The notes beneath the pieces were generated by a model, which saw only the letters and a program-made list of their open reading frames with translations, was not told the origin of the DNA and did not search any database. 32,000 bases of DNA from Paramicrosporidium saccamoebae KSL3 (Eukaryota > Fungi > Cryptomycota). The stretch is from the NCBI GenBank assembly GCA_002794465.1, contig MTSL01000206.1, forward strand, positions 1-32,000. The letters are read 5' to 3'. The position numbers were made by a program, and so were the translations under genes. Below, in pieces: positions 3 through 26,867 of this stretch (the stretch's first letter is position 1; every line of letters starts with the position of its first letter).

Positions 3-417
3 CGTTGGCTGAGCTATGCGGAGTTCCGTGCGGAGTGCACTTCCTCAAGTGCGCTTCACGACGATTACGACTTTGGGGCGAAAGCCGCATTGCTTGTATT
101 TGTTGACCCTACAGCGGCGATTCAATGCCGTAGGTGGTTTGTGGAGTACTCTATACTCCTAAAGCTGTCCTATTCCCTGAAGGGCATGGAACTAGTGGAC
201 CTGATCCGGTTCATCTGGAAGTGGGGTCCTTGACCGGGAGACCCGGTTGGATTGCACATTCCGTGCTTTCGAGAGTCTTAGGGTCACTCCTGGGATGACA
301 AAGTCTTTGTGCGTCGCACTGCTTTGCGAGCATCCAGGGCACCTGGATTCATCAGAAGCTTTTTTCAAGCTGGCCTCTCATAGAAGGATTGATGTGGATG
401 GAGTGTATTATCTCTGA
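3..417 (+). pseudogene. Family B paralog, 5' end outside the window, one frameshift near 225-231 (pseudogene or assembly error)
   Basis: Frame 3 from nt 3 reads RWLSYAEFRAECTSSSALHDDYDFGAKAALLVFVDPTAAIQCRRWFVEYSILLKL...IRFIWK, matching B1 SWLSFEEFKTEC...EKAALLIFADP...CREWFVRQALLLKL...IRLMWK. After TGA 231-233 similarity continues in another frame (LDRETRLDCTFRAF vs FNAAIRQDCFLDAF) to TGA 415-417. Not in the ORF track. Confidence 0.65.
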
Positions 418-596: not shown

Positions 597-831
597 CATG
601 CGATTAGCATTGCTTCATATCAAGAGGTCTTCAGAAAGCTTGTCTTGAGATGCCTATCATTGTGAGAGCTATCGGTTAAACGTCGGGACATCAGTTTCGT
701 TGATTCTGCAAGTCAGATACAGCGCTCCTCCTTTACCCTAATAAAGGCTATAATTGCTAATCTCGGTGTTGTGGCCGCATTAGAAGGCCACCTGGCGGTC
801 TCTTGAGCTTGGGACCGCTGCTCCTTCTTTG

Positions 832-1400
832 GGGATACTATGGGACCGCTACTTGTGGCGCTGCCGCAAACTGCGTAAATCTGGAGAGAGAACCGCCACT
901 TTCTGCAGGCTCCGTCCGGTGGATGGGCCGATTAGCTTTTTCCAGGCAGTATCCGTACGCCGTAAATCATCCTTCTCATTATTCTAGATCGCCTTCCAAG
1001 ACTACAAAAGAATCGACGTAGAATGTCTTTCTCGAATGCCATTGCCAATATTGAGGAAGATCTTTGAATCAAGGGTTTGGGGCCGCCAATGGCTCAGTTT
1101 TGAAGACTTTACTACGGAGTGCACCCGGGAGGTCAGCATTTATGACGTGAAAAAATCCCGTCAAAATGCTAGCCTCTTGCTTTTGGTAGACCCACTAGTG
1201 GCTGCTCAACGCCGAAAGTGGTTTGTCACACATGCAATCATGCTGGAATTGACCCAAAGCTTAATTTTAAAGTTTATGAATTAGCGAGCTCTATTAAGGG
1301 TATCTGGAAGAGCAGTGTATCTATTGATGCGGCTCGAGTAAGCTGTGCTGTTCACGAACTGAGCCTTCTAGATAGAGTAGAGACAAAGGTCTTGTCCTAA
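832..1400 (+). pseudogene. Degenerate family B copy with several stops and frameshifts
   Basis: Separate frames give WDRYLWRCRKLR...DGPISFFQAVS (cf. B1 WEWRRRR...DGMTFTQAVS), WLSFEDFTTEC...ASLLLLVDP...RKWFVTHAIMLEL (ORF 1036-1284) and IKGIWK. Boundaries approximate. Confidence 0.6.
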
Positions 1401-3259: not shown

Positions 3260-3341
3260 GACACGATGGCCGAGTGGTTAAGGCGTGTGACTAGAAATCA
3301 CATGGGCTCTGCCCGCGCAGGTTCAAGTCCTGCTCGTGTCG
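3260..3341 (+). tRNA. tRNA-Ser, anticodon AGA (3293-3295), intronless, long variable arm
   Basis: Acceptor stem GACACGA/TCGTGTC, D-arm TGGCCGAGTGGTTAAGGC, anticodon stem TGTGA/TCACA around CTAGAAA, variable arm GGGCTCTGCCC, T-loop GGTTCAAGTCC; no encoded CCA. Confidence 0.97.
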
Positions 3342-6119: not shown

Positions 6120-8599
6120 ATGGAGGACGGACCAAAGCACATTGATGCCATGAACCCGGCCGATTTGCACGAGAATATTGATTCGCCGCACTTTCGTCCA
6201 GCTTTTGGGGACCTCACAAACAATGAAAATTTCGCCCTCGAGTCACCCGGACAGTTGGCAAAGAAGAGAAAGTCACTTGGCCGGCGGGTTTCGTTTGCAG
6301 CAAAGGCCAAAGTGCGGTACTATTTGTAAAGTTTGACTAATTGCAGATTCATTGACAAGGACTCGGATGCGGAGGCTGCTGAATTTGCAGAAGAGGGCGA
6401 CAATAATGTCTTTTTGGTTGAAAAAACACCAGTCCGGGAGCCAAACGTTCCGAAAGAGTCGCCAAAGTCCGACATGGACATGTCGGTTGTCTCCAATGAC
6501 AGCATCGAGGTCGAGTTGAAGGACCCCCACTCTTCCTTCTCCTCCTACGATTCAGCCGAGGAGGTGGAGAATCGTCCCAGTTTTTTGTTGGACGACATGG
6601 AAATGACCAAATGTGTGGGCGGGATCATTGCACCCAGCCAAAACACGGAAGACACGACGATGGATTTGACATCTTGCATTGGCGGCATTCTGAATAACAT
6701 TCCCAACTATGCCATGTCGCCCTCTTCAGTGGACACGATGGAATTGACAAATGTCGTTGGAGGCATTCTGGGGCCTTTGAAATCTAAAGGAGCAGATTCG
6801 CCAACGGCTCCAAAAGTGGAAGATGTTGTAGAAGACATGGCCGCAGTCATCAAGACTGCCAGAATTGCTCCAGATAGTCCGTCGCCCTTCCTAGCGACCC
6901 CCACCAGACTAAACTCGCCAATGCACAGCGAAGTCTCTTTCATTGGTGATGTAGATCAACCTGGAAGTCTTGGATTTGGGGCCAGTCCGGCACCTCCTCG
7001 AACTGAGGCCGCTGAAGATATGGATTTGACAACTGAGCTATTCAACAAGTACATTGATACCAGTCGATTCAATGCCCTGACTATGCGTCCCACAGAAGAA
7101 TCGCCTCCTGCCAAACAATTGTACACGCCCCAAAGTCCTGCCATAAATCTTGTCCCTCCAACCTCTCAAACCGAGAGTCCCACCGTGACAATCATGCTTC
7201 CGAGGGCATCTCTAAAGGACTTTTTAAACGAGACAGGCGTCCGCTTCCTGGACAATATTTCGTCTCTGAATCGTCGTGAGACTACCGGTCGTCCTCGTGA
7301 ATCTGAAGTTGTCAGTGCGGCCAAGCAGCTTTTTATTGATGGTGGACTATCTTTGGAAGGGGATGCGCTCGATGATGCCTGTGTTCGTCTGGCCGGAATG
7401 CTGACTGAAATTCGAGACGATTTGCAAAAGCAAGAGGAGCAGTTTAACCATTCCCCACCGTTGGCTTTCCTTCAATATCGTGATCCTGAGGAACGTTCAA
7501 ACGTTATCAGCAAGCTCAAAACACTCAAGAGTATTGCTCGTCTGTATGCCAAACAGGCGTGGTACGAATGGCGTAATCCTGTCCACTCGGCTCTGAATCG
7601 CGATTTGGAAAAGAATGTCCAAGTTGTCTCTGAACGCGTCGCCAAGCTGATTGCCCTGGGACAGAAACTGGATGAGACTATCACCAACCTCTCTCCCCTT
7701 GTAGATGGAATCACTAGTGAGGCCGAGGTTATGCGCGAGAGATGCGATGCCATGGCTACTGATGATGTCGAGCAGGTACAGCAACTCGAGCAACTTGTCA
7801 CTGCTCAAACTGAAAAGCTGTCGACAATCGATTCGGAAATGTCCGCTTTGGTCAGTCGGGAGGAAGAGCTTCGTGCGAGCATTGATCGTGCCTTGTCCAA
7901 ACGGAAGGAACTCCAGCAAAACGTTGCCATGATTAAGCAACAGATTGATTCGGTGCCTGAAACGTCGCCCATTATCTTGGAAGAGCTTCGTAGTTCGTTC
8001 AAGCTGCTTCAGGGCGCAACCGGTTGGAGATTATTGAAAATTGCTGCCACCGAGTTGCACTTGCAATTCACACGCGCCGAACTTGGCGTCGCCTTCAAGC
8101 TTTCCCTTGACTCGACAGGGAAATCTATAGTGTCATCCGTGGCCTTTGATGCCACTCAGGTAAAGTCAAGGATACTGAAGCATGTTTCCCGCATCCTGCG
8201 TGTCCCTACTGATCTTACCCTGTCACAGGTAACACATTCATCAACCTCATATTTTAGTGTTTAATGTATGTTGGACAAAGACTAGACAGGCTGTCTCAGA
8301 TCGACAAACAGCTTCATGTCGTCGGAGTGCAGTGTACCGTTGCCATCCCTGATCTCATCGGTCCTGATACTTGCGTGATCCCCATTGCCCTGGGTTTCTA
8401 TCATCAATCGTCTCGCGCTAAATTTGATCTCCTCCTAACTTTGGATGCCGAACGACTCTCATATTCGCAATTTGTCTATTTCTATGGCGCCGTGAAAGAG
8501 CACCATGTAATGGATATTGTGCAGCTCACTCTAATGCACAAATACCAGCCGATCCGGCGCCTGGTGGCCGCAATCCAGGAGGCCATCGATAATCAATAG
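6120..8599 (+). CDS. SPC105: Kinetochore scaffold Spc105/Spc7/KNL1, about 806 aa; introns 6317-6346 and 8229-8257
   Basis: RRVSF PP1-docking motif (6285-6296). MELT-type repeats MEMT/MDLT/MELT followed by xxxGGI at 6597, 6660, 6738, and MDLT at 7020. ASLKDFLNETGVRF, WYEWR, coiled coil, C-terminal globular region. Two introns join ORFs 6105, 6333 and 8264 in frame. Confidence 0.88.
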
Positions 8600-8939
8600 T
8601 CAAAAATAGCGATTTTATCTTTTTGATGTCGGACCATGAATGTAAAGCCACGAAGCTGGCTACTGTCAGCTATTTATTTGAGAGTGCATTATAATGTTTC
8701 AGATTCGTCCATGCCCTTATGCGGTTGCAGCTATTTGGAAAGATGTAGTGCTAATCTAGTGCAGATTTAGGAATCCCTAATCCGAAAACTTTAGATCGAA
8801 CAGCCTTCTGGTGAATCCCGATAACATATGTCACCGCTTGGCGTTACTTTTAAATGTTCTATCTATGGAATCCCAACATTTGGGGGCCGAATGTCGTCAA
8901 TAGAATGATACTACCACTAATGACACCAAGTTCTCTTTG

Positions 8940-9062
8940 ATGGCATACTTTGCGTTCAGATTCACCAAAGAAAGCGCATCTGTTTCAATATTGATACAGT
9001 TTTCAACTACGCAACTGATCGTCCTCTTCCTGCTGATGGTATGGGTTGTAGCCAGTCTATTC
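8940..9062 (+). pseudogene. Family A copy A0, truncated after TM1
   Basis: MAYFAFRFTKES...LIQF...LFLLMVWVVASLF aligns to MTYLTFRFSKGS...LVQF...LLLLMAWNVGNLF, then similarity stops. The family promoter motif is present upstream (8851) but the TATA reads TATCTATG. Confidence 0.7.
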
Positions 9063-9174
9063 GAGGGCATGTCTCGTCGGAGAGTGCTGCCACAAAGTCA
9101 AGGCTTTCTAGCGAACTAAATGCATCTTGACACGTAGAAACGAAACGATATGATAGGATATGAAATGCCACTCT

Positions 9175-10440
9175 TTATTCCGTAATTTCGGTAGTATTAG
9201 GTTCCGGCATGTCGACAACGCACTGATTTCCACTGGGACCTGCAGTACTGGGCCCTGCTTGACTTGATGGGGGCGACGCGGCGTCTTCAGTCGTTGGAGG
9301 AGGAGGTGGTGGTGGGATTATCGAGCTCACCGGGCGTATCGCGTTCAGATTACACACCTCGCAATGGCTCCGGGCCCTGGGCGCCCTCTTCCTCCAGCCG
9401 TACCAGGTGGTCCTCCAGATCGGCGTCTCTTTGGAACAGCGATATCCGCAGAGCTCGCACTCCGTGGCGTCACCTGGAACATACCAAGTATCGAGCTTGA
9501 GCTCGTCTTCTGTGCACAACCTAGAGGGCTCCACGTTTCCACACTTTGCCTTAAATTTAGGCATCTCTCGGTTGATCCAGGTGGCGTCGACATCAGCATC
9601 GGCATTAGTGGTGGTGGTACCGGATACGGCGGCGGTCTTGGTAGTGTCGGTGCCATGTTGTTCAAGAAGCTTCTGGCACAGTGCCAGTGCAACAGCTTTG
9701 TCCTTGCCCTTGACCAGCCGATAAAACGCGTCCAAAAAGCAGTCCTGCCGGATGGCCGCATTGAAGCTCTTCTCTTTCCACATCAAGCGGATGATTTCGG
9801 CCAAATCACCACCCTCTGCGGCACGGAAGAGTTTCAACAGCAATGCCTGTCGGACGAACCATTCTCGACATTCGGCTACATCGGAGGGGTCCGCAAAGAT
9901 TAACAATGCGGCCTTTTCTCTGAAGCTCTTGTCTTCATCGAATGAGAGGCCCAGCAGACACTCAGTCTTGAATTCCTCAAAACTGAGCCAACTCCCGTTA
10001 CTCGCCACCGTTTCATACGTCTGTTTCAAAGACGGAAACGAAAGTAACGGGATATTGGATGCACTGATGCGTCCATACTGCTTGATCGCAGTGGATACGG
10101 CCTGGGTAAAGGTCATCCCATCCTTGAGGGCACCGTCAGGATAAAAGTTCTGGTAATATCTTCCAACGATTCTCCTTCGGCGCCACTCCCACGCAAGGCG
10201 ACCAAGCAGCACGGTTATAGGTATGATGGCCAAACCTGCCGCAACAAGATACGGCCACCACGGATGAAACCTTCCTAGAGCCGCCATGCTACCACTGAAA
10301 ACCGCTAAGATGCCAACTGTCGCCTCTGCATAGGCGAAACAGCGGTAACGACCCCGAAACTTCTTTAATCTGCGCATTGTCGCAATCAGCCCGAAGGCAA
10401 GGGCGAAGACAGCCCCAAGGACAGCGGGTGTAACGTCCAT
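9175..10440 (-). CDS. Family B copy B1: unknown protein of 421 aa with 3 N-terminal TM segments, soluble core, CxxC...HCxxC finger and Pro-rich tail
   Basis: Long intact ORF; first ATG at 10440 lies about 45 nt below a TATAAATT box; three hydrophobic segments followed by RRRR; paralogs at 3-417, 832-1400 and about 15960-16760. Confidence 0.8.
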   Translation of the reverse strand: MDVTPAVLGAVFALAFGLIATMRRLKKFRGRYRCFAYAEATVGILAVFSGSMAALGRFHPWWPYLVAAGLAIIPITVLLGRLAWEWRRRRIVGRYYQNFYPDGALKDGMTFTQAVSTAIKQYGRISASNIPLLSFPSLKQTYETVASNGSWLSFEEFKTECLLGLSFDEDKSFREKAALLIFADPSDVAECREWFVRQALLLKLFRAAEGGDLAEIIRLMWKEKSFNAAIRQDCFLDAFYRLVKGKDKAVALALCQKLLEQHGTDTTKTAAVSGTTTTNADADVDATWINREMPKFKAKCGNVEPSRLCTEDELKLDTWYVPGDATECELCGYRCSKETPIWRTTWYGWRKRAPRARSHCEVCNLNAIRPVSSIIPPPPPPPTTEDAASPPSSQAGPSTAGPSGNQCVVDMPEPNTTEITE

Positions 10441-10484
10441 TGTTCTTGCTGGTTTGATTTTACTGTTGACCAGGGGCCGAGGAG

Positions 10485-10676
10485 AATTTATAGGCTGACT
10501 GGTTCTCGGAAAACACCACAAATTTCAATGGACATGGTTGACAGGTTAAATGTTAGTCGTTGATTGGTCAATAACGAGTTAGCGATACTGATAATTGATG
10601 TGATTGGACAATACCGAGCCGACGGTACCGGCAGCAAATATGATTGGCCAAAGTAAAGACAATGGTGATTGGCTGG
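10485..10676 (-). promoter_or_regulatory. B1 promoter: TATA box plus repeated CCAAT boxes
   Basis: TATAAATT at 10485-10492; TGATTGGNCAA at 10561, 10601 and 10641 (CCAATCA on the minus strand), a fourth TGATTGG at 10666. The same TATA context (16809-16816) and one box (16932) are kept upstream of B2. Confidence 0.6.
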
Positions 10677-10984
10677 ATCGTGTGGCTGTACATGTCAAGA
10701 ATAGTCATCGTACACTAAGGGCAGTGAGACTAAAGGGCCTGCCAGACTTGCCGCTGTTGTTGTAGCTCTTACGGGAAGAAGCGTACCTGTAATGAGCTGT
10801 AGTAAAACTTCCCAAGGTGGTGTATTCCTGACTTTATCTATTGGCTTATATTTTGTGTTTGTGAAACAGTTGTAATTCTAAATGCTCCCTATCAATAAAG
10901 ATTTGCAAGCTATTGTCTAATGAGTGCTATGTGCATTTGCTGAAGAATCCGGGGTGGAACACTCCAATCAGTTACTGTTGTCTC

Positions 10985-11030
10985 TAAATGTTCTATAAAT
11001 AGTCATTCGACACTTGGGGTCGAAACATCT
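10985..11030 (+). promoter_or_regulatory. Conserved family A promoter motif (AAATGTTCTATAAATAG...GGGGYCGAAAYATC)
   Basis: TATA-type core 61-85 nt upstream of the ATG in five copies (10994, 12110, 14175, 17269, 18493), plus a mutated version in the motif at 8851 upstream of A0. Confidence 0.65.
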
Positions 11031-11072
11031 ATCAAATAGAACACTGTCCCTGATGCCTCTGATATCCTTCTG

Positions 11073-11888
11073 ATGACATACTTGACATTCAGATTCTCCA
11101 AGGGTAGCGTGTTCGGTCCGAGATTGGTGCAGTTCCTCAGCTATGTAACTGATGCAGTCCTCCTCTTGCTGATGGCATGGAATGTCGGCAACCTATTCTA
11201 TCCGTTCTGGAGTACGGTCACACTCGTCTCCCTCTGGATCGGACTTGTTGTGCATCCATTCATCTTCTGGCTCGTCAAACGATTCCGTCTTCGCTCTGTA
11301 ATCGTCCCCAAATTCAAACTCATTGGGCCGGAACCGAAAGGTTATTACGAGCGCCTGAAATATCTCGGGTTCTTATACTCCGTCTGGGAGCGTTCCGATC
11401 ACTTGTGTCTGTCGTACTACTACTCACACGACGGATTCTTTTGCTCGAGGAAACGAGGTGCCTCTCGCTCATTTTATATGCACTGTAACACATTCCTGGG
11501 TTGGCTCACTGTCATACTCACAGATTTCATTCCGATAGCTGTGCTGATTGGATTCCTCTGTGCTGGCTATTTTCTTGGCATTGGCACTCTCATCTTCTTT
11601 TCCATGGGTCTCATTTTGGCATTCCAGCTGAAGGCTCTCTATTTCCGCTTTTATGAAGCCAGCCACGAGTGGAAAGACGAGATGGTTCTAGGTGAAAAGG
11701 TCCGCACTACCAAACATCTTGGATTGATGGCCTGCATACTGGAAGGACCGGATGGTGAGCTGTTCCTGGGGCTGGCCAAGTCTGTTGAATATGATCATTG
11801 TGTGAGATATTATTGGTTAACACCGCCGAGGGGGGGTGAATGCGAATGTTGTCCCTCTGCTTCACCTCTGCCTCGATTTAAAACATGA
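11073..11888 (+). CDS. Family A copy A1: unknown 4-TM protein, 271 aa
   Basis: Intact ORF, upstream TATA, AATAAA at 11926; conserved with three other intact paralogs; differences from A2 in the first 18 codons are all synonymous. Confidence 0.85.
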   Translation: MTYLTFRFSKGSVFGPRLVQFLSYVTDAVLLLLMAWNVGNLFYPFWSTVTLVSLWIGLVVHPFIFWLVKRFRLRSVIVPKFKLIGPEPKGYYERLKYLGFLYSVWERSDHLCLSYYYSHDGFFCSRKRGASRSFYMHCNTFLGWLTVILTDFIPIAVLIGFLCAGYFLGIGTLIFFSMGLILAFQLKALYFRFYEASHEWKDEMVLGEKVRTTKHLGLMACILEGPDGELFLGLAKSVEYDHCVRYYWLTPPRGGECECCPSASPLPRFKT

Positions 11889-12186
11889 TTTACCATAGGG
11901 AGCGCTTTCAGTATTAATACCCTTCAATAAATGCAGCATGCAAAGAGCCCAGTTTATTACAACGGAGAACCCGAATCAATACCAGTCGCCCAACCGCTGT
12001 TCTATAAAAAGCTGATTTTGGATACTAACAAACCTCATTCCACCTTGATTTTAACTATCGGAGTAGGCACGAATATGCCTCGACTAACAGGCATCCTTTT
12101 GTCGTTACCTATAAATAGTCATTCGACACTTGGGGTCGAAGCATCTATCAAATGGAACACTCCCTGATGCCCCCGATATCCTTCTG

Positions 12187-13008
12187 ATGACATATTTAAC
12201 ATTCAGATTCTCCAAGGGCAGTGTGTTCGGTCCAAGATTGGTGCAGTTCCTCAGCTATGTAACTGATGCAGTCCTCCTCTTGCTGATGGCATGGAATGTC
12301 GGCAACCTATTCTATCCGTTCTGGAGTACGGTCACACTCGTCTCCCTCTGGATCGGACTTGTTGTGCATCCATTCATCTTCTGGCTCGTCGAACGATTCC
12401 GTCTCCGCTCCGTCATCGTCCCCAAATTCAAACTCATTGGGCCGGAACCGAAAGGCTATTCTGAGCGCCTAAAGTATCTCGGGTTCTTATACTCCGTCTG
12501 GAAACTTTCCGATTCCTTGTGTCTGTCGTACTACTACGTAGAAGACGGATTCCTTTGCCCGGGGAAACGAGCTGCCTCTCGTGCATTTTATATGGATTGT
12601 AACCCGTTTCTGGGTTGGCTCATCGTCATACTCACAGATGCCATTCCGATAGCTGTGTTGATTGGATTCCTCTGTGCGGGCTATTTTCTTGGCATTGGCA
12701 CCCTAATCTTCTTTTCCATGGGCCTCATTTTGGCATTCCAGATGAAGGCTCTCTATTTCCGCTTTTATGAAGCCAGCCAAGAATGGGAAGACGAGATGGT
12801 CTTGGGTGAAAAGGTCCGCACTACCAAACATCTTGGATTGATGGCCTGCACACTGGAAGGATCGGATGGTGAGCTGTTCCTGAGTCTGGCCAAGTCTGTT
12901 GAATATGATCATTGTGTGAGATATTATTGGCTGACACCAGCAGGTGGATGCAAATACGAATGTGGATGTTGCCCTTCTGCTTCACCTCTGTCTCGATTTA
13001 AAGGATGA
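12187..13008 (+). CDS. Family A copy A2, 273 aa
   Basis: ATG at 12187 is homologous to the A1 start (the track's 12130 start is TTG); close tandem paralog of A1; AATAAA at 13046. Confidence 0.85.
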   Translation: MTYLTFRFSKGSVFGPRLVQFLSYVTDAVLLLLMAWNVGNLFYPFWSTVTLVSLWIGLVVHPFIFWLVERFRLRSVIVPKFKLIGPEPKGYSERLKYLGFLYSVWKLSDSLCLSYYYVEDGFLCPGKRAASRAFYMDCNPFLGWLIVILTDAIPIAVLIGFLCAGYFLGIGTLIFFSMGLILAFQMKALYFRFYEASQEWEDEMVLGEKVRTTKHLGLMACTLEGSDGELFLSLAKSVEYDHCVRYYWLTPAGGCKYECGCCPSASPLSRFKG

Positions 13009-13587
13009 TTTGTCGCGGAGAGTGCTTTCAATATCCCTATCATTTAATAAATACGATATGTATAGATTTAGTGTACTACAGCGGAAAATCTGAATTAATA
13101 TCAGTTATTTTACGCCTTTATATCGAAAAATTAAAGTCTCGGATACTAGCAAGCCTTATTCCGCCTCACTTTCGACTACTGAAACAGGCACAAGGCCAGT
13201 TTCGAGCACCCAGATTGGCGTTCCAAGAGCTGTTGCGTAATCTCAACGCATAAAGAGTTTTACAAAGGTGTACCATCCAAGCAACCTTTGAAATCACAAA
13301 TGACACACTAACAATCCTGAAATAGTAAAGATACAGGTCTCACTGCCTTTAATTAGCCGCTCCAAATATGTCACCTACAAACTAGCGTATCTTCTTCAAA
13401 GAGCATGACAATCAATCTACTATATCACATGGCCACGGTGCTAATGTGTAAAGTAGTGGAATGTTTATTATCAAATATCTTTTCTCCGGGATGGTGCCAA
13501 TGTGTCCAGACATTGAAGAGCCGACACTTCCGTTCCATAATTGCACAATTATCCAGCACCCAACTAGCCATTTCACTGCTTCACATA

Positions 13588-13820
13588 GTGGCCGTAATCT
13601 AGGAGGCCACTGATAACCGATGGCCAATAATAGCAATTTTATCTTTTTGATGTCGGACCATGAGCGGAAAGCCAAGAGACTAGCTATTGCCAGCTACTTA
13701 TTTGGGGGTGCTGCTCTTATTGGTACCGCTTGTACAAGCCGTGTGACTCGTAGGGTTTGGCTTTAGCGCATTCTCAGTATTCCGAATGATGCGGGCTAAT
13801 CATGCTGGTGACCCGATAAA
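13588..13820 (+). repeat. Duplicate of 8563-8825: last 12 codons of SPC105 plus downstream spacer
   Basis: GTGGCCGTAATCTAGGAGGCCACTGATAACC...TTTTATCTTTTTGATGTCGGACCATGA matches GTGGCCGCAATCCAGGAGGCCATCGATAATC...TTTTATCTTTTTGATGTCGGACCATGA. A distal anchor CTGGTGA(AT)CCCGATAA is also shared. Confidence 0.85.
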
Positions 13821-14258
13821 GTGCGTGTTCTGGCAGCGAGTCCGTGTCATTTCAAATGCACTTTCCATCTCTCTTCTAACACTTCCCTTGGTGCTTCCCT
13901 ACTTTTCAAATTCATTCATACTCTTCCGCACCACAACTAAAATTTAATTTCTAATCCGCCCTAATGAGCTGCTTACTTGGGACTAGCCGTCTCTAACGAC
14001 GACGCCATTCAACAGGCCGCCGACTCTTCGTCAATCGTGCGAATCAATAAAGCAATTGTAACGAGAATTTCATAGTTGGCCAGTCTTTGGATATCCACAG
14101 AACAGTATATCGTGCGCCTCTTGGACAGTTGGAGCCGGGGAACCTCGGCCAATCGAAACTAGCTTACCATGTTTTATTAATAGCCATCAAGCATTTTGGT
14201 CAGGGGAACATTTTTATTGGATGCCTCATCCTTGCTAGCCGTTCTGGCATCTCCACCG

Positions 14259-15080
14259 ATGACATACTTGAAATTCAAATCCTCCAAGAGTAGCCGGGTT
14301 ATTCCGGTACTTGTTCAGTGTCTCAGTGTGATCGCTGATACGCTCCTGCTCTTGCTCATGGGCTGGAACATTGTCAATCTGTTCTATCCTCTTTTTAGCT
14401 GGATCGCCATTACCCCCCTCTGGGTCGGTCTTATCATGCATTCGTACATCTTCTGGATCGTTGACCGCTTCAGACTCCGATCCTTTGTAGCTGCCAAACT
14501 CCGCCTCACTGACCAAACCACGTCGGAACAAGCCAGCCGCTTGAAACATTTGGGATTTCTGTATTCGGTATGGGGAAAGTCCGACTCTCTTGCCTTGGGA
14601 TATTACGACTGCTTAGATAGAGTTTACTGTCAAAAGAAACGTATTGCCATTCTACATTGTGAAAGCGACTATAACAAGTGGATAGGCTGGTTCGTTGTTT
14701 TGGTCACCGATGCCCTGCCGTTTGCTGTGCTTATGTCGTTGCTTTGTGCCGGCTACTTTCTTGGTATTGGCTCTGTCATATCCTTTGCAATGGGGCATAT
14801 CCTGGCTCTCCAAATACAGACTCTCCATTTTAGCATCCGGAAATCACATTATTACTGGAAAGAGGAAATGTTCTTTGGTGATAAAATGTGCAAGAGCAAA
14901 TCTCTTGGATGGATGACGTGCGTTTTAGAGGGACCCGACAGTGAGCTGTTCCTGACACTAATCAAAGTGGCCGAGTATGATCACTACGAAAGACAGCACT
15001 GGTTCAACTTGGCAAATTGGAAGGTGTGCGCATGCTGTACCTCAAATTCATGTGCTGCTCCCTCTGGGGAGAGTGTATGA
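14259..15080 (+). CDS. Family A copy A3, 273 aa
   Basis: MTYLKFKSSK start homologous to the other copies; keeps RLKHLGFLYSVW, VTDA, CVLEGPDSELFL, YDH and the CxCC tail; AATAAA at 15123. Confidence 0.85.
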   Translation: MTYLKFKSSKSSRVIPVLVQCLSVIADTLLLLLMGWNIVNLFYPLFSWIAITPLWVGLIMHSYIFWIVDRFRLRSFVAAKLRLTDQTTSEQASRLKHLGFLYSVWGKSDSLALGYYDCLDRVYCQKKRIAILHCESDYNKWIGWFVVLVTDALPFAVLMSLLCAGYFLGIGSVISFAMGHILALQIQTLHFSIRKSHYYWKEEMFFGDKMCKSKSLGWMTCVLEGPDSELFLTLIKVAEYDHYERQHWFNLANWKVCACCTSNSCAAPSGESV

Positions 15081-15959
15081 TGTATCATAGATCGATCCCC
15101 TACTGTACCGTCAATACCTTGAAATAAAGATGACTTTGTGTGTAATAGCGAACTTCTCGAGTTTCGGGTGCGGAGACACCTCAGCCGACACGGCCAAGAC
15201 GGTTAGAGGTGAGATCCCGCAATCTCTCTCGCAAAAAGCCCTAATATAACGCCGGCGATACCAATGTAGTATGCTGAATTTCCGAATCGGCACATTCGTT
15301 TCGGTAGTTCTAATAAACTAATCTTTTCGCTTTTAAAATGAGCATTCGAAATCCTTGCCGAGAGAGGCTTCTATTAGCCGAACGTTGTTGCCTTGGAGAA
15401 TACTTCCAAGACTGGTAGCGCCTCGACTCTCTACTGGCATTACCCTGCTATTACGACGATACTGAACATTACCACTATTTGGCCTCTAGTTAAGAAAATA
15501 CCGGATTATCCAAAACACTTTGTAATGGCGAAAATTATCAAATCCATTCTTGCAGCCGACTGCTCGGATATTACATTCATTGAACGATATTCCTAAGCAG
15601 CCCGAACGAGGATAAACTATTCATGCGCTAGACTTTTCCAGGCATCTAGAGCCTTGAAGCGACTGTAAATGCCTGAAAAGATCCAAGGCAAGCCTATACG
15701 CTTGAATTCCAATGTCTGCCGTAGTTGCTATTGTCGATTTGTAATCATTACTCGGCCGAGTGCTGGCTACAGGATCCATGGCTACATCCCGGGTGTTTCT
15801 GTGTTTTTGTAACCACGAAAGCACAGCATTCTCTTGACTGACTGCTTCTCGCGTTTCCAAACAAGACGGTCCAATTTAGTTCTGACGCTTGCAGAGTGCA
15901 CTGCGAGCAGCCCGAATATTAGAGCCGATGCACTCGGCACACTGGATGTGGTAGAAGGA

Positions 15960-16760
15960 TCTTCGAGTCCAGGAGCAAGATCGGAGGATTGAGCTCATAG
16001 GGCGTACGCATTTAGGTTACAAACCTCACAGTGGTTCCGGGCTTTGGGTACCCTTCGTCTCCAGCCATGCCAAGTGGTCCTCCAGCCCGGCGTCGCTTTT
16101 GGGCGCTGATAGCTACAAAGCTGACACTCTGTGGCGCTCCCTGGGGCAAACCAAGTACCAAGCTCGATCTCATCATCCGAACGCAGCACAAAAGCGTCAA
16201 TGTTCCCGCACTTTGCCTTGTGCTTGCCCTCGACCAGCCGATAGAATGCGTCCAAAAAGCAGTCCTGCCGGATGGTCGCATTGAAGCTCTTCTCTTTCCA
16301 CATCAAGCGGGTGATGTCGGCCAAATCACCACCCTCTATGGCACGGAAGAGTTTCAGCAGCACTGCCTGCTGGACGAACCATTCTCGACATTCGGCTACA
16401 TCGGAGGGGTCCGCAAAGATTAACAATGCGGGCTTTTCTCTGAAGCTCTTGTCTTCATCGAATGACAAGCCCAGCAGACACTCAGTTTTGAACTCCTCAA
16501 AACTGAGCCAAAGTCCGTTACTCGCCACCGTTTCAAAGACGGAAACGAAAGTAACGGGATGTTGGATGCGCTAATGCGTCCATACTGCTTAATAGCAGTG
16601 GATACGGCCTGGGTAAAGGTCATCCCATCCTTGAGGTCACCGTTTGGGTAAAACTTTTAGTAGTATTTACCAATGGCTATCCTCCGGCCATAAAGTACCA
16701 TCGATGACGGCCAGAATGCATACCAGCGGTGTTATCCTCTAAACTTTTTGGGGCTGCGAA
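15960..16760 (-). pseudogene. Family B copy B2, pseudogene
   Basis: Near-identical to B1 in the core, but with a premature TAA (16657-16659), a 13-nt deletion near 16530, a 147-nt in-frame deletion near 16220, a 1-nt deletion near 16007, and an eroded TM region. Confidence 0.88.
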
Positions 16761-17049
16761 GGAGAATACGGCCGGCTAGGTTGGTCAGTTACCAGGGAGG
16801 TAAAAGGGAATTTATAGGCTGGCTGGTTTCTACAATAAACGCCACAAATTCCAGTAATATTATTGGGCGATTCAATCGGCTAGATCCCTAACAATAACTG
16901 GATAATCTGTGTGAGAGGGCAAACGTATCTGTGATTGGTCAAATATAGTGGTGGCGACAGCCTTAATAGTCGTGGGATGTGCTTTACGACACAGGGTACG
17001 GGGAGACGGCAGGGTGGCTCGGTCATGAGCTTGTGGTTTGACTCTTCTG

Positions 17050-18530
17050 CTGTGAGTGAGTACAGAGCTTCCCGTTGAAGCAAAGTTCAATGCAAAGGAA
17101 TTACTTTGCCTGTTTAATGCATGATTTCATCATGAGAGTGAAAAGGAAAGCAATTATTAGTCTTCATTTTCAATCAGCTCTTTAATAGTGACAACTGGAT
17201 ATTCAATGTGCCTTCCGGACTGCCTGGGGTAGGGTACTCCAACCAGGTAACGTTGCTTCTAAATGTTCTATAAATAGCCATCCAACAAGTGGGGCCGAAA
17301 TATCATCTATTGGATCAGACATTGCTACTGACAACTCCGATCCCCTGCTGATAATGTACTTGACATTTAGACCCACCAAGGGAAGCATACTTATTCCCAA
17401 ACTGGTGCAGTTTCTTAGCTATTCAGCCGATGCACTTCTCGCATTGCTGATGGCATGGAGTATTGTCCATCTGTTCTATCCCATTTGGAGCTGGGCAACC
17501 TTTGCTTCTCTCTGGATCGGGATAGTCGTGCATCCATTCATCTTCTGGCTCATCATACGCTTCAAAATTCGTGCTTTCGTGATTTCCAGATATCCCTCCA
17601 TCGATCAGTACGCCTCTCCACCTGCGTTCCGCCTGAGACATCTTGGATTCTTCTTCTCAGTGTGGGAGTATCCTGATTCCTTGGTTCTAGCAGAGTACCA
17701 CGGACACGATATCCTATTCTGTTTGAAACAACAATATCCCCGCTTTTCATTTTCAACACAATACAAAAAGTGGGTGGGATGGCTCGTCGCATTATCCACT
17801 GATGCCCTTCTGGTGGCCTTGCTAGGTGGGCTATTGAGTGCTTGCTACTTTTACGGCATCGGCACAATTGTGTTCCTTGCAATGGGCGTCATCTTGGCTC
17901 TCCAAGTGAGGAGTCTCCGTTTCCGCTTCAGCAAGTCCCATTATCAGTGGAGGGATGAAATGTTCTTTGCTGATAAGATGTGCAAGACCAAGCCTCTTGG
18001 CTTGCTGACATGCATCCTGGAGGGACCTGATGGCGAGCTGTTCCTGACTTCCCCCGCGGTGGTATGGTTTGACCATTATAGAAGAAAGCATTGGATCTTA
18101 AGGGAAGCGGAGTTCTTATGTAAGTGCTGCCACCCGGCTCCCCTCCCCGGTCCACCTGAAAATGCTGTATGATGATTGATTACCCGTTTATTAGCTATTG
18201 CAGTGGACATTCAATAAAAAGCTCTACTAGGTATCTACCTCATGAGCAATGCTGCTGAGAGGCAAAGGTTCTTTAGTTGTGAGTCAATATGAAATTTCCC
18301 GTTGAGGCAAAGTCCCATGCAAGGAAATTAATTTGCCTGCTCGGTACATGAGCTCACCATGAGAGTAAAAGGGAAAGTAATTATTAGTCTTTATTTTCAA
18401 TCAGCTCTTTAATGGTCGCAACTGGCCATTCAATGTGCTTTCTGGACTGCCTGGGATAGGGCACTCTCGGTTCATTCTGCCCCTAGATGTTCTATAAGTA
18501 TTCATCCAACAGGTGGGCCGAAACATCACC
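17050..18530 (+). repeat. Duplicated upstream spacer of A4 (about 17050-17300) and A5 (about 18277-18530)
   Basis: Shared tracts TTCCCGTTGARGCAAAGT, CATGAGAGT, ATTATTAGTCTTYATTTTCAATCAGCTCTTTAAT and GGACTGCCTGGG define a tandem unit of about 1.2 kb. Confidence 0.85.
17354..18172 (+). CDS. Family A copy A4, 272 aa
   Basis: Intact ORF MYLTFRPTKGS...RLRHLGFFFSVW...STDA...CILEGPDGELFL...CKCC; TATA at 17269; AATAAA at 18213. Confidence 0.85.
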   Translation: MYLTFRPTKGSILIPKLVQFLSYSADALLALLMAWSIVHLFYPIWSWATFASLWIGIVVHPFIFWLIIRFKIRAFVISRYPSIDQYASPPAFRLRHLGFFFSVWEYPDSLVLAEYHGHDILFCLKQQYPRFSFSTQYKKWVGWLVALSTDALLVALLGGLLSACYFYGIGTIVFLAMGVILALQVRSLRFRFSKSHYQWRDEMFFADKMCKTKPLGLLTCILEGPDGELFLTSPAVVWFDHYRRKHWILREAEFLCKCCHPAPLPGPPENAV

Positions 18531-18553
18531 CATCGGAGCATATTCTCTTACTA

Positions 18554-19108
18554 ATGATGTACTCGACGTTCAGACCCACACAGGGAAGTGTGCTTATTCC
18601 AAAACTGGTGCAGTTTCTCAGTTATGCAGCCGATCAAATTCTCTTTTTACTGATGATATGAAATCTTATCAATCTGTTCCCTCCCATTTGGAGCTAGGCC
18701 ACTTTTGCTTCTCTCTGGATCGGATTAGTCGCGCATCCGTTCATTTTCTGGATCATCGAACACTTCAAGATTCGTGTTTTCGTAGTCACCAGACACCCCT
18801 CCATTGATCAGTATGCCTCTCCACCTACGTTTCGCCTGAGGCATCTTGGATTTCTCTACTCAGTGTGGGAGTATTCCGATTCCCTGACCCTGGCGTACTA
18901 TCACGAATACGATGTCGTCTTTTGCTTGAAACAACAATATCTCCCCCTCATGTTCTCAACGCAATATAGAAAGTGGGTGTGATAGCTCTTCTCGTTATCC
19001 ACCGATGCTATTCTGACATGTTTAATAATTGAATTGCTCGGCGCTTGCTACTTTCACGGCATCGGCACAATTGTGTTCTTTGCGATGGGTCCCATCTCGG
19101 CATTCCAG
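18554..19108 (+). pseudogene. Family A copy A5, pseudogene
   Basis: Colinear with A4 but with in-frame stops at 18659, 18695, 18980 and 18983; similarity ends after TM4 (AFQ); TATA reads TATAAGTA. Confidence 0.9.
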
Positions 19109-19508
19109 TCTGACAGAAACATGGGCGCCGCAATGGGCTTTTCCGCATCTTAGAGTCACCCGACAAACCTACGACACCAGCAACGACAGAGGAGAAATCG
19201 TTTGCGCCAAAGGAACAACGAGCATTGACTCAAAGTACCATAAGAAGCAGGACACGAGAGTAAATCTCAGTCCAACTATTACTTGTCACATGTACTCTTG
19301 GGAAGCACCAATGCCGAGTCCTACTGGACAATGGCGCTAGTCAAGCTTCGTGTTTTACAATTAGCGCCAGCACGCGAAATCGACTCGGCAGCCAAAATAC
19401 ATTTAGCATTTAGTACGTGCGATTCTGTGCTATCACTGGTACTGGCCAGGCCCTCTCACTCGACAATGAGTAAAAATCAATAATCCTTTAAATTTAATTA
19501 CTTTATCT

Positions 19509-21089
19509 ATGACTAGCAGTCCAACAGACTCCAACGTAACCGTGCACTCTGATAGCCGTGTGCGTTGTAAGATGCCCCCCACGGGCAGTCGAATCAGCTG
19601 GGTGTCACAATTAGATATTGATGCCACGCCGGCATGCGTCCGGAAGACCTCCATCATCTGCACTATTGGACCCAAAACGAACAACGTGGATTCTTTAATT
19701 GAGCTGCGAAAGGCAGGAATGAATATTGTGCGGATGAATCTGTCGCACGGGTCGCATGAGTACCATGGATCAGTGGTGGAGAATGTACGACGGTCATTTG
19801 AAGTATTCCCAGGGAGACCGGTGGCGCTTGCATTGGACACAAAAGGACCAGAGATCCGGTCTGGCGAGCTGGAAGGCGGGGTTTGCTTGATCCCAAAAGA
19901 TCATGTATTCATACTGACTACTGATGAGAAATATCGTCTGTGCGGCGGTCTAGAGCGGGTCTTTGTGGATTATCCACAGATTGGTGAGACTCTGGAGCCG
20001 GGCAAGCTAGTATACGTTGACGACGGCAATTTGCAGCTGGAAGTACTCGAGTCTCTGGGGAGCCAAGGAGTCAAGGTTCGAGCCTTGAACTCGCATAAAT
20101 TGCTGAATCGAAAAGGAGTCAACTTGCCGTACACAAAGGTCCTGATCCCCTCAGTGTCGGAGAAGGACAAGCAGGATTTGCGGTTTGCGGTTGAGCAAAA
20201 GATGGACATGGTCTTTGCCTCCTTTATCCGTAAGCCCGAAGACATTCACGAAATACGAAAAATACTGGGAGACAGTAAGATTCTCGTGATTGCCAAGATT
20301 GAAAACCACGAGGGAGTGAAAAACTTTGACGCCATCCTGGAAGAGGCAGACGGAATCATGGTAGCCCGTGGCGATCTCGGGATTGAGATTCCTCCTCAAA
20401 AGGTCTTTGTTGCGCAAAAGATGATGATTGCACGGGCCAATCTGAAGGGTAAGCCAGCGATTTGTGCCACGCAAATGCTCGAATCCATGACGCAGAACCC
20501 ACGACCCACGCGAGCAGAGGCATCCGATGTGGCCAACGCCGTTCTCGATGGCGCAGATTGTGTAATGTTGTCGGCTGAGACGGCGAGTGGAAATTATCCC
20601 GTCGAGACAGTACGCACAATGGCCAGCATCTGTGCCGAGGCTGAATCGACCATTGCCTATTTGCCGCTGTTTGAAGAGCTACGAGCTCTCATTGGCTGTG
20701 CCGAGAATGTTACTGAGACTATTGCCTGTTCCGCTGTTAATGCAGCATCGGAGACATATGTCCAGGCAATCATTGTGCTCACCACCACTGGCGGCACTGC
20801 TCGTCAGGTTGCCAAATTCCGACCACAGGTGCCAATCATTACAGTGACCCGCGAAGATTTGACCGCTCGACAAATCCATCTTCATCGCGGCTGTTATCCG
20901 CTGGTCTGGAAAGAATCACATGATCCGCAGAACGAATGGCAGGGCGACGTCGATGGACGTTTCCGATGGGCCATTTCCGAGGCCAAACGGATTAATCTGC
21001 TCAAAACGGGCGACCATGTGGTGCTCATCCAAGGAGCCCGAGCAGGACATGGCCATACCAACACTTTACGCATCCTCCAAGTCGAATAA
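19509..21089 (+). CDS. PYK1: Pyruvate kinase, 526 aa
   Basis: IICTIGPK, RMNLSHG, ALDTKGPEIR, VDDG, KGVNLP, DMVFASFIR, IAKIEN, GIMVARGDLGIEIP, ATQMLESM, PTRAEASDVANAVLDGADCVMLSAETASG. Confidence 0.98.
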   Translation: MTSSPTDSNVTVHSDSRVRCKMPPTGSRISWVSQLDIDATPACVRKTSIICTIGPKTNNVDSLIELRKAGMNIVRMNLSHGSHEYHGSVVENVRRSFEVFPGRPVALALDTKGPEIRSGELEGGVCLIPKDHVFILTTDEKYRLCGGLERVFVDYPQIGETLEPGKLVYVDDGNLQLEVLESLGSQGVKVRALNSHKLLNRKGVNLPYTKVLIPSVSEKDKQDLRFAVEQKMDMVFASFIRKPEDIHEIRKILGDSKILVIAKIENHEGVKNFDAILEEADGIMVARGDLGIEIPPQKVFVAQKMMIARANLKGKPAICATQMLESMTQNPRPTRAEASDVANAVLDGADCVMLSAETASGNYPVETVRTMASICAEAESTIAYLPLFEELRALIGCAENVTETIACSAVNAASETYVQAIIVLTTTGGTARQVAKFRPQVPIITVTREDLTARQIHLHRGCYPLVWKESHDPQNEWQGDVDGRFRWAISEAKRINLLKTGDHVVLIQGARAGHGHTNTLRILQVE

Positions 21090-22176: not shown

Positions 22177-22483
22177 CATGGCCAACTGACGTGAGCATGA
22201 TTTTCTAATAGTTTTTTTGCAGTATAAACAGTCTTGCCACATCATTATCCCAACTAGACACAACCGGATCAATTATCAGACATGGCCGGCTGACGTGCTC
22301 ATGCTTTTCTACTAGCTCTTTGCAATATAAACAGTCGCCACATCATTGTCCCGACTAGATAAAATTCGATCGTTTATCAGACGTGATCGGCTGACTTGAG
22401 CATAATTTTCTAATAGTTTTTGCAGTATAAACAGTCTCGCCATATGATCGTTCCGACTAGATACAATTTGGTTATTTATCAGA
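22177..22483. repeat. Three tandem ~102-bp units between the KIF15 stop and the eIF4E start
   Basis: CTGAC anchors at 22186, 22290 and 22391; each unit has TTTTCTA.TAG...TGCA.TATAAACAGTC...CC.ACTAGA...TTATCAGA. Confidence 0.92.
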
Positions 22484-25400
22484 TCCGACACTAAAATGTC
22501 CGGTTCTTGCACTCTTATATATATCCTCCAGCTCCACATTGCGCTGTGCCAGCCGAGCAAGCTCATCTCGGAGGTGCTTAATCTCTACTCGGAACTGGTT
22601 GTTCTCCTCCTTAATCTGCACATGGTATTGCAGCTTTTGCTTCATGTTCGAGTGTTTGATCAGCTTGTCATTCTCGCGCGTCAGCTTCAGCACCTCTTCT
22701 TGCATATTCTCCATCTCTTGATGCAGATGTGCTACCGTCTCTTGGGCGGCCGCCAAGTTTTCACGATCCGTTGGAGAGGAGGAGAGCTTGGCGATATGAG
22801 AGAGCAGTTCTTCATTGTCTTGTTGGGCTGACTGTAGGGTAAATTCCAGACGTTTGACGCGTTGCTGTAAAAGGGTTTGCTGTTGATCTCCCTGCTCAAT
22901 GCGGCGGACAATTTCATCAGTAGAAGATCCGTATGACTTTAGCGGGTCATATCGTAACAACTCTCCAGATAAATTCGATATCTGTTCCTCAAGGTCTTTA
23001 ATCTTTTGCTGGTTGAGGGCAGCTTCGTTACGGACATCTCGGAGAAGATCACATGTTTGATGATATTGCGTCTCGACCTCTGTCAGGGTGGAACGCAAAT
23101 TCTCCACAGTCGTCGCAAGTGCCTTTTTCTCCGAATCGAGACAATTCTTATCTCCCAGCGCATCCTCCAGCTTTTTGCAAGACTCGTCAAATTGGTTCTT
23201 CATCAACAGCATCTTTTCCTCATATCTCATCTTTTCACTGTGCAAATCTCCTTGTAATGTCTTGGCTGCATCAGCTTCTGTTTTTGCTGCTCCACGAATA
23301 TCCTCTAGATTCCCACGAAGCACTTGATTTTCCATCTCCAGCTGGCAAATTTTTCGCTCCAGTCTCTCTTGCATAACCAAAAGCTCTTCATTCGATTTGC
23401 TCATTGCTTCGTCGGCTTGATCACGTTGTGCTTCATTGGTCTGATCACATTGTACTTCATCAGCCTGATCACATTGTGCTTCATCGGCTTGATCGCATTG
23501 TGCATCACGGTTACATCGCTTTCTCTTGCCAATACTCGCCGACGACAAATTCATGTTGGAGGCACACAATTCTTCATATTCCTTCTTCATCATCTCGTGG
23601 GCAGTGTGTAAATCTTCGAACCTGCCTTCAAGAGTCTGTTTCTCAATTGCGAGTTGCTCAAACTTACTCCTCAGCCCTGCATCAGCGTTCAGGTCATTAT
23701 CCGATTTACGTAGCATCAAGAGGGATTCAGAACTGACCTGCTGCACTGGAATTTCGTCTCCCTCCTCGGGTGCTTGAGCTTGCCGTACTTTATCTTTTGC
23801 TTCCCGCGCCTGGATCTGATTCTTGGCCGCAGTGTATTGTTGTGACAAAATCTCTGAATATTTTCTGGCCTTTGCCAAGGCCGCTTCGTGGGCTTCAAGA
23901 TTATTCATAAAGGAATCCAACTGAGACATTCTGGCCTTTAGCTGAGCACTCTCCTGAGCAAACTTGATGACTTCGGGATGACAATCTAGCATCTTTTTCA
24001 ATTCGGCAATCTCTGTTTTGTATTGTTCCTAAGTGTGAATGAGGAGACTATAGGGTACCCTTTCGGCATCAAAAACGTCAAAAAAGCTGTCAGGGTTCTG
24101 TTCGGCGAGTTTGCTCTGGAAGGCTTTGATTGTCCCTTCTCTCAACTTGGCAATCATTTTCTCCGACTAAAGCATTACTAACACGACATTGAGCTACGTT
24201 GACTTGCTGGTCCTTCCTCTTCAATTGCTCCTCAAGCATTTCTAGGCGCTGTCTCGTCTTGCTGATTTCAGCCAGACTTTCGGCCTGTCGTTCTAAAGCA
24301 ACCGACAACATGAAATAGACATCACTTTGCTCTCCTTGGGCAGTCAATGATTCCAACGTAGTTTCGTCAATGGGATGTCTACCTCCCTGGGTCTTGAGCA
24401 CCAAAACTTCGCCACGAAGTCTACGTATTTCTGCTTGCAGCTCCACTAGATTCCCTTGGATATCCTTATTAACAATAGCCTTATTTCGGATTTGCTTGGC
24501 GCGCTGGGCAAATCGCAGGGTGCTGAGCGATTCGGCCTGACATAGGGGCGATGGCGAAACTGCGGCAATAATCAGCGTCTTGGCATTTCCACCCAACGAA
24601 TCGCGCAACAAAAATGTCAACCGCGAATCACGATAATGCACATGTCTTGGTTTTCCATTTGCAATATCCACGAGGGCATTAATGACGTTACTCAGGGCAA
24701 GGAGACTTTTGTTAATATTCCCCGCCTCCTTCAGTCTCGCTCCCGCTGTATTGGAAAATTGTTGTCGCTCCGATCCAGCCAAATCCACCAAATTGAATCT
24801 CGCCTCTCTCACATCCAGGATCTCTCCATCCAATTTTTTGCTCTGCAAGAATATTGTAAACACGGAATGGGAACGGCTCGATTCACGATTCATTGACGTT
24901 TCTGCGACATGTCGGTTTCTAGACCCTTCCTCAAACAACATGAATGCATCTTGGGGAGAGTAAATGGTCTCTTCACGACAGCCCTCAATGTAGACACCCT
25001 TTTTAGCGTCCTCTCGCAGATTGCAGACAGGGCCACTGTGGTCGAGGAGGTCGTAAATGCACTCATTGTAAATTTCAACGTACGAGCATTTGCAGTAGTG
25101 AGAGATTGCGCCATGACTCTTGCGCTCCTCCTCGCGGATGCGCTCAAAGAGATATTCAAAGATGCGGGGGATCATTCCGCGTTGTCCATAGTCAATGCTT
25201 CCGTCTTCATTGACGGGGCCTTGCATTGTAAAGGTCTTTCCCGAGCCTGTCTGGCCATATGCAAAAATGGTTCCATTGTAGCCCATCAGACAGTTATCTG
25301 TAATGTCACGTCCAGCAATATTAAAGACATCCTCCTGTTTGATATCGGCGCCGCCAATAGCATCAAAGGTAAAGTTTTCGCCATCGACGCTGCCAGGCAG

Positions 25401-26630: not shown

Positions 26631-26867
26631 CCCCGTCCCTTTGTCGCGTAGTGGGGATAATACCACGGCCCAGTTTAGGCGAGAAGAGACGAGGTGGGAC
26701 GAGAAGAGAATTTATTCAGTCGATCCAACGACCCATTTATAGTCTCACAAATAACATTATCCTTCATCGATTGTTCTGATTATCCCTTCTCCAAACTAGG
26801 GAACTATCCTCAAATACCCAACTAATCAGTCTTCTACGCCACACCCTTATACATAGATGTGCTAATA

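Follow-up and report, generated by a model that had tools for sequence, protein, structure and literature searches.

Lineage-specific amplified gene families are known from Microsporidia, among them the InterB-type families of Encephalitozoon and the large gene families of Nematocida. Membrane proteins are also encoded by toxin-antidote pairs, such as peel-1/zeel-1 of Caenorhabditis elegans and wtf of Schizosaccharomyces pombe, and the reticulon and REEP proteins are built as double hairpins in the membrane. Here we describe a cassette of two gene families, named A and B, in positions 1-32000 (the window, 32,000 nt in length) of contig MTSL01000206.1 (70,785 nt; assembly GCA_002794465.1) of Paramicrosporidium saccamoebae. 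The two families have been passed on and multiplied side by side, in the alternating order A> <B <> A>, both here and in uncultured relatives. The cassette resembles the InterB and Nematocida families in its restriction to one parasite lineage, in having several copies with pseudogenes among them, and in lacking recognisable domains. It differs from them in lying between the core genes Spc7/Knl1 and pyruvate kinase and not in a subtelomere, in consisting of two unrelated families kept as alternating neighbours, and in that its products are predicted to face the cytoplasm, are under purifying selection and match no Pfam family. The contig is part of the genome MTSL00000000, which comes from an intranuclear parasite of Saccamoeba that branches beside Microsporidia (PMC5701793), in keeping with the intracellular parasite supposed in an initial annotation of this DNA.

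The cassette is bounded by Spc7/Knl1 and pyruvate kinase and reads, from left to right, A0 B1 A1 A2 A3 B2 A4 A5. It holds four intact A genes (~272 aa, four transmembrane (TM) helices), two A pseudogenes, one intact B gene and one B pseudogene. Copies were placed by tblastn together with a listing of open reading frames (ORFs), and the result reproduced the layout in the initial annotation, which had given six A copies on the plus strand, two B copies on the minus strand, the same order and housekeeping genes on both sides. Two B-family relics at the start of the contig are additions to it. The copies and relics are as follows.

8842-9119, plus strand: A0, a relic; the promoter block at 8842-8911 is degenerate and the A homology at 8940-9062 covers the first ~42 codons (tblastn)
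9175-10440, minus strand: B1, intact, 421 aa; three TM helices, a helical domain, CxxC-x28-CxxC and a Pro-rich tail
11073-11888, plus strand: A1, intact, 271 aa, four TM helices; absent from the indexed public gene set, as are A2, A3 and A4
12187-13008, plus strand: A2, intact, 273 aa
14259-15080, plus strand: A3, intact, 273 aa; orthologue on environmental contig L008 (68%)
15923-16692, minus strand: B2, a pseudogene (tblastn) that has lost its first ~85 codons (the TM region) and has a frameshift near 16528-16540, an internal deletion and a premature stop
17354-18172, plus strand: A4, intact, 272 aa; orthologue on environmental contigs L006/L007 (62%)
18270-19108 including a promoter relic, plus strand: A5, a pseudogene duplicated from A4 (70% aa identity), with A homology at 18554-19108, four in-frame stops and truncation at ~residue 185
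3-414, plus strand: B', a frameshifted B-family relic that runs off the start of the contig and window; 68% identical to the intact B of environmental contig L017 over aa 149-220, with another frame extending to aa 286 (tblastn)
808-1263, plus strand: a second B-family relic with an in-frame stop, found by tblastn with B1 (31%, aa 69-204) and with the L017 and L005 B proteins, and by translation

The divergent spacers measured 632 nt between B1 and A1 and 661 nt between B2 and A4, the latter counted from the end of the B2 homology; 0.5-0.65 kb had first been reported.

Evidence on the relation between A and B came from uncultured relatives, represented by contigs from the Joint Genome Institute (JGI) samples 3300042203 to 3300042205 that were found by exact-protein look-ups. 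JGI metagenome contigs scanned twice with the alignments of A and B returned nothing, the collection evidently being without the samples that hold the relatives. A was located beside B on five independent environmental contigs, with seven A-B junctions in all, arranged as follows.

L002: A on the minus strand, B on the plus strand, A on the minus strand
L004: A on the plus strand, B on the minus strand, A on the plus strand
L005: A on the plus strand, B on the minus strand
L006: A on the plus strand, B on the minus strand
L017: A on the plus strand, B on the minus strand (intact, 374 aa), A on the plus strand, B on the minus strand, a clean A-B-A-B

Identity of the environmental copies to those of the window was 37-68% for A (A1) and 27-47% for B (B1), and the adjacency spans at least four A subfamilies. 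Each of the six environmental A genes whose 3' flank reaches ~700 nt or more was followed by a convergent B, and the contigs on which no B was seen have a flank too short to show one. Tail-to-tail (A> <B) was the commonest arrangement among the relatives. The initial annotation had proposed that finding A and B unlinked elsewhere would speak against its pairing of the two; co-occurrence on five contigs, one of them with A-B-A-B, upheld that pairing. Because adjacency is conserved across several A subfamilies and the two families share an identical narrow distribution, functional coupling of A and B is supported. Some environmental B frames were broken at or before the junction of the TM and soluble parts with their length unchanged (L002, 600-1150; L004, 1951-2089; L005, 2049-2083), and these copies are either pseudogenes, as B2 is, or assembly errors. 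An intron in B was considered and rejected, since the total length is preserved and the breaks in L004 and L005 look like single frameshifts.

Neither family could be assigned to anything described, in agreement with the first reading, in which both had gone unrecognised. A HMMER search with a profile of 11 A sequences retrieved 12 proteins among 1.84 billion cluster representatives, all of them members of the family on short contigs, and a word-indexed search retrieved seven; for B, three proteins were found in 5.8 billion, namely the B1 of the window, P0009 and P0021. Pfam gave nothing meaningful for A or B even at an E-value of 10, no A or B scored above a curated threshold in NCBIfam or PHROGs, and hmmsearch against PDB sequences gave nothing below an E-value of 0.69. 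Foldseek with the A model found no match in PDB or BFVD at an E-value of 0.001 or better, and with the B model it was uninformative, the model having a predicted local distance difference test score (pLDDT) of 53 and the alignment being too shallow. A literature search returned no paper naming the two families or the JGI samples. Taken together, the searches indicate that A and B are two new families, with a range confined to Paramicrosporidium and its close relatives. A relationship between A and B themselves was rejected (hhalign probability 0.2%), as was a viral or mobile origin, given that there were no relatives of A or B among IMG/VR viral contigs, no PHROGs matches, nothing significant in BFVD and no inverted repeats in 8000-19600; the ORF listing of the cassette contained no transposase-like or other long ORFs.

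Pairwise ratios of nonsynonymous to synonymous substitution (dN/dS) among A1-A4 were 0.21-0.35, at synonymous divergences (dS) from 0.23 (A1/A2) to 1.9. Comparisons that involved pseudogenes gave 0.27-0.31, which is consistent with constraint through most of the divergence and is not conclusive alone, since one member of each pair is still functional. The conserved motifs held in 21 A and seven B sequences. These results show that A and B are true protein-coding genes under purifying selection. Among the indexed genes of the contig, B1 had been called (P0008) and no A copy had, so that B1 alone of the cassette genes is annotated correctly in the public gene set. That set also contains a 118-aa gene at 16067-16423 on the plus strand, antisense to the B2 pseudogene and with no Pfam match, which is probably a spurious call. 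The genome was annotated with MAKER and a custom RepeatScout masking library (PMC5701793), and the A genes are likely to be missing because the multi-copy A family was masked as a repeat. If this explanation is true, repeat-masking of multi-copy genes would hide the lineage-specific genes that are likeliest to carry parasite-specific biology. The coordinates given here permit the A genes to be added to the annotation and the probably spurious antisense call to be dropped.

The AlphaFold2 (AF2) model of A had a pLDDT of 73.7 and a predicted TM-score (pTM) of 0.64. Its elements run from an N-terminal strand through a TM hairpin (14-41/48-81) and four to five strands (94-138) to a second TM hairpin (140-168/170-199), then four strands (203-234) and a helix (235-249), and end in a disordered tail that carries CxCC. 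Neither short turn (FYPFWS, LGIG) contains lysine or arginine, and the long loops contain 13 and 10 of these residues, so by the positive-inside rule all soluble parts of A should be cytoplasmic. The N-terminal strand, the central loop and the C-terminal region are thus predicted to lie on the same side of the membrane, and the soluble segments could pack into one small beta domain. Residues 89-128 aligned with residues 207-247 around K-x-L-G-[FL]...E-x-x-D-x-L-x-L (hhalign score 20.9), a value reached by none of 200 column shuffles (maximum 19.6), and A therefore appears to contain an internally duplicated unit in which a beta-meander follows a TM hairpin. Residues invariant in the 21 sequences include Y3, L4, F6, C124, G143, W144, D151, E224, G225, C259 and C260. 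D151 lies in TM3 (G-W...T-D-x-x-P); this buried Asp and the Cys clusters are the sole hints to chemistry.

The B model is consistent with three TM helices, an all-helical cytoplasmic domain and a disordered Pro-rich tail. Seven of the 15 residues in the loop between TM1 and TM2 are lysine or arginine, and the positive-inside rule predicts that the entire C-terminal part is cytoplasmic. C328, C331, C360 and C363 were invariant in all seven sequences and form a zinc-ribbon-type CxxC-x28-CxxC, which probably binds zinc. The residues predicted to be exoplasmic amount to loops of six and four residues in A and of three and nine in B. Models and residue counts thus agree with the initial annotation that both are membrane proteins.

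Two known membrane architectures were compared with A. Of the 50 best PDB matches that Foldseek gave for the A model, about half were to MscS, MSL10, MscK, YbiO, YnaI, MSL1 or FLYC1, at E-values of 0.24-3 and a TM-score of ~0.2, none of them significant. In both the A model and MscS a Gly/Ala-rich TM helix is directly followed by a small beta domain, and by eye TM4 of A and the strands after it resemble TM3 and the beta domain of MscS; the A model differs in having no C-terminal alpha/beta domain. Membership of A among MscS-like channels was rejected when A was compared by hhalign with an alignment of six Escherichia coli MscS paralogs under column-shuffle controls, which gave a probability of 0.3% and scores of 15.4-16.3 that were reached by 25 of 150 shuffles, and the PF00924 MS_channel profile matched none of 11 A members even at an E-value of 10. 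What remains is a weak architectural likeness in the predicted fold, which may serve as a lead. With reticulon and REEP proteins A would share two helical hairpins with very short turns, and a cytoplasmic N terminus, central loop and C terminus. It differs from them in its helices of 28-34 residues, a length sufficient to span the bilayer, and in its buried invariant Asp and beta domain, and neither family appeared among the Pfam matches of A even at an E-value of 10.

To describe the control regions, we begin with the TATA-type octamer CTATAAAT, which occurred seven times in the window against 0.7 expected, a ten-fold enrichment; a count of seven was reached by no shuffle. Five of the seven lie in the cassette, 47-80 nt upstream of a B or A start, at 10486(-), 10993(+), 12109(+), 16810(-) and 17268(+), and belong to B1, A1, A2, the B2 relic and A4, respectively. 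The promoter elements and poly(A) signals are listed below.

10486-10493, minus strand: TATA block of B1, CCTATAAATTC, 47 nt upstream of the ATG
10561-10672, minus strand: four CCAATCA boxes of B1, at 10561, 10601, 10641 and 10666 (spacing 40, 40 and 25 nt)
10951-11045, plus strand: promoter block of A1, with CCAATCA at 10964 and CTATAAATAG at 10993, then the conserved element CAYYCRACA..TGGGG.CGAAA
12109-12161, plus strand: promoter block of A2, 96% identical to that of A1
14147-14183, plus strand: promoter of A3, with CCAAT at 14149 and a weakened TATA, TTATTAATAG, at 14174
17226-17320, plus strand: promoter block of A4, with CTATAAATAG at 17268
8842-8911, plus strand: promoter relic of A0, its TATA mutated to CTATCTATGG at 8859
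18492, plus strand: TATA position in the promoter relic of A5, mutated to CTATAAGTAT
16810-16817, minus strand: surviving CTATAAAT in the promoter relic of B2, with CCAATCA at 16932
11926-11931, plus strand: AATAAA of A1, +38 after the stop
13046-13051, plus strand: AATAAA of A2, +38 after the stop
15123-15128, plus strand: AATAAA of A3, +43 after the stop
18213-18218, plus strand: AATAAA of A4, +41 after the stop

The TATA boxes on both sides of the spacers, the CCAAT boxes near B and the AATAAA after the stops of intact A copies had all been noted initially and were recovered here. AATAAA at +38 to +43 was present in all four intact A genes of the window and in 7 of the 10 from environmental contigs. 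Upstream of A, the block CTATAAATAG..CATCCAACA is common to the window and to environmental contigs L002 and L004, and the B TATA block with CCAATCA also stands upstream of the B gene of L005.

The history of the array could be partly read from its repeats. The 3' end of Spc7 with its downstream sequence (8564-8687, plus strand, 124 nt) is copied at 13588-13711 on the plus strand with 82% identity, and we infer that a segmental duplication, taking part of the neighbouring gene along, gave rise to the two halves of the cassette, A0-B1-A1(-A2) and A3-B2-A4(-A5); the segment at 8564-8687 marks the left boundary of the duplication and that at 13588-13711 the left boundary of the second half. Tandem duplication would account for the pairs A1/A2 and A4/A5, A2 being a recent duplicate of A1 (89% aa identity, dS 0.23, dN/dS 0.25). 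Identity between the halves was patchy: B1 and B2 were 89% identical over 487 nt (9695-10181 versus 16215-16688) and 72% identical alongside (9320-9552 versus 15988-16219), and A1 and A4 were 66% identical, the flanking A genes having nearer orthologues in other organisms. This pattern suggests later gene conversion, between the B copies. The A1-, A3- and A4-type paralogs each share 62-68% identity with an environmental orthologue and 47-49% among themselves, and in a neighbour-joining tree A1/A2 grouped with L002, L005 and L010, A4/A5 with L006 and A3 with L008, with additional A clades that have no member in the window. Since the three types are nearer to environmental orthologues than to one another, the paralog classes predate the split from those relatives, and the array is old and no recent burst.

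On these grounds we give an even chance to the reading that A and B form a two-gene membrane module whose products assemble into a hetero-oligomeric complex, with A as the core and B as an accessory. In such a module A paralogs would oligomerise in a membrane of the parasite to form the core of a small assembly resembling a channel, transporter or scaffold, and B would be an accessory or regulatory subunit that binds the cytoplasmic beta domain of A. One B might serve several A paralogs, as the four intact A genes and the one intact B gene of the locus would allow, and the locus would have grown by segmental and tandem duplication and would now be shedding copies. Several observations weigh against the module. 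Intact A and B genes stand at 4:1 and three A copies have no adjoining B, so that strict pairing is not required and, in stoichiometry, the two-component system proposed initially is weakened. The A model is moderate, with two of five models good and three poor, and the B model is poor. The idea of a channel or transporter is weak, as it rests on one buried Asp and a fold resemblance that failed the profile test. Every A copy has its own TATA block, those without a neighbouring B included, and the promoter designs of A and B differ, with CCAATCA arrays in B; with tail-to-tail as the commonest order among relatives, this tells against the co-regulation from a shared head-to-head promoter that had been suggested. 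Co-divergence of A and B partners, examined over few points and with a badly aligned B2, gave a Spearman rho of 0.27 for tail-to-tail pairs (p = 0.24) and 0.61 for head-to-head pairs (p = 0.06). The ratio of intact genes, the separate and dissimilar promoters and this co-divergence result would also be compatible with A and B being functionally unrelated and having become neighbours through repeated duplication of a block that held both, and the duplication of A without B in A1/A2 and A4/A5 points the same way. We nevertheless consider such a chance association unlikely, because adjacency persists on the five independent contigs at the identities given above and across the A subfamilies, which would be hard to keep without selection in compact genomes, and because A and B are equally narrow in taxonomic range. 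A bolder form of the module, in which A would be an unseen class of small, internally duplicated four-pass channel or transporter, marked by its invariant buried Asp and a Cys-rich beta domain in the cytoplasm, with B as its dedicated three-pass, zinc-ribbon partner, a new two-component system from the Paramicrosporidium lineage, appears doubtful to us. Paramicrosporidium lies near the base of Microsporidia and is used in reconstructing the evolution of these parasites, and a membrane complex of A and B, if there is one, would be an invention of this lineage without structural precedent.

Other readings set the cassette apart from cell function or turn it towards the host. Host-facing surface proteins, a receptor or antigen with its partner under birth-and-death evolution, would suit an intranuclear parasite and lineage-specific amplified families of which some copies are decaying, and a receptor role had been offered in the initial annotation. 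This now appears very unlikely: the soluble mass is predicted to be cytoplasmic, with outside loops of three to nine residues and neither a signal peptide nor a large ectodomain, the Cys-rich and probably zinc-binding motifs suit a reducing cytoplasm, dN/dS of 0.21-0.35 gives no indication of diversifying selection, and the paralog classes are old. The age of the classes also divides the earlier proposal of birth and death, of which duplication and decay stood (A1/A2 and A4/A5; relics A0, A5 and B2) and fast turnover did not. By analogy with peel-1/zeel-1 and wtf, the cassette might instead be a selfish toxin-antidote or drive-like element that spreads and decays, with A as a four-TM poison and B as its linked TM antidote. 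The likeness lies in a small four-pass gene tightly linked to a gene for a TM and soluble-domain protein, in changes of copy number with pseudogenes, in lineage restriction and in insertion among core genes. We hold this to be highly unlikely, as there is no sequence relation to such families and no meaningful Pfam match, purifying selection has maintained orthologous paralog classes from one species to the next, a ratio of four intact A genes to one intact B gene would amount to poisons without antidotes, and the region 8000-19600 has no inverted repeats and no transposase-like ORF. That the cassette is non-functional repetitive DNA, either dead relics or an unclassified repeat, would explain the missing annotation of A and would agree with the use of a RepeatScout library for masking (PMC5701793), with the absence of A from the genes indexed for the contig and with the three to five copies that are clearly dead. 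This explanation is largely refuted, and its chance is slight in the extreme, by the four A ORFs, which are full-length and show dN/dS of ~0.25 with dS reaching 1.9, by intact orthologues on independent contigs and by the conservation of the start context, the TATA block and the poly(A) signal.

The cassette is set among core genes. To its left lie a DRMBL/Mdm12-MMM1 gene model, a tRNA-Ser gene, a UDP-glucose pyrophosphorylase family gene (PF01704 UDPGP) and Spc7/Knl1 (6120-8599), and to its right pyruvate kinase (19509-21089), a kinesin with a coiled-coil tail, Bud13, a UbiA prenyltransferase and an RBM39-like RNA recognition motif protein. Spc7/Knl1, on the plus strand, contains MELT repeats and is divided between two reading frames, with the junction at 8264; since the public model places 775 aa in 2480 nt, short introns are implied. 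The tRNA-Ser(AGA) gene (3260-3341, plus strand) falls within the 576-aa minus-strand DRMBL/Mdm12-MMM1 model; presumably it occupies an intron, or the model merges two genes that lie on either side of it. On the other side, the public model from 21126 to beyond 24089 on the minus strand is a 1271-aa protein that matches IF4E as well as Kinesin and HMMR_C. In the ORF listing the motor of the kinesin (24090-25604) is distinct from the coiled-coil part (22472-24001), each having an ORF of its own, and the fusion of an eIF4E domain to kinesin looks like a merged gene model.

Several repeats were also recorded in the window. A 101-nt tandem unit in 2.9 copies (78% matches) occupies 22186-22483, in the interval from the pyruvate kinase side to the coiled-coil/kinesin gene and close to, or within, the 3' end of ORF 22472-24001 on the minus strand, and shorter tandem repeats were found at 26409-26503 (39-nt unit, 2.4 copies) and 23405-23507 (24-nt unit, 4.3 copies). 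A dispersed non-coding repeat of ~240 nt is present at 1401-1644 on the plus strand and at 26636-26851 on the minus strand, that is, in inverted orientation and 25 kb apart. Its copies are 71% identical with one 28-nt indel, have stops in all frames and no Rfam match, and one of them contains CTATAAAT; the repeat may represent a small mobile element or an RNA gene of unknown kind.

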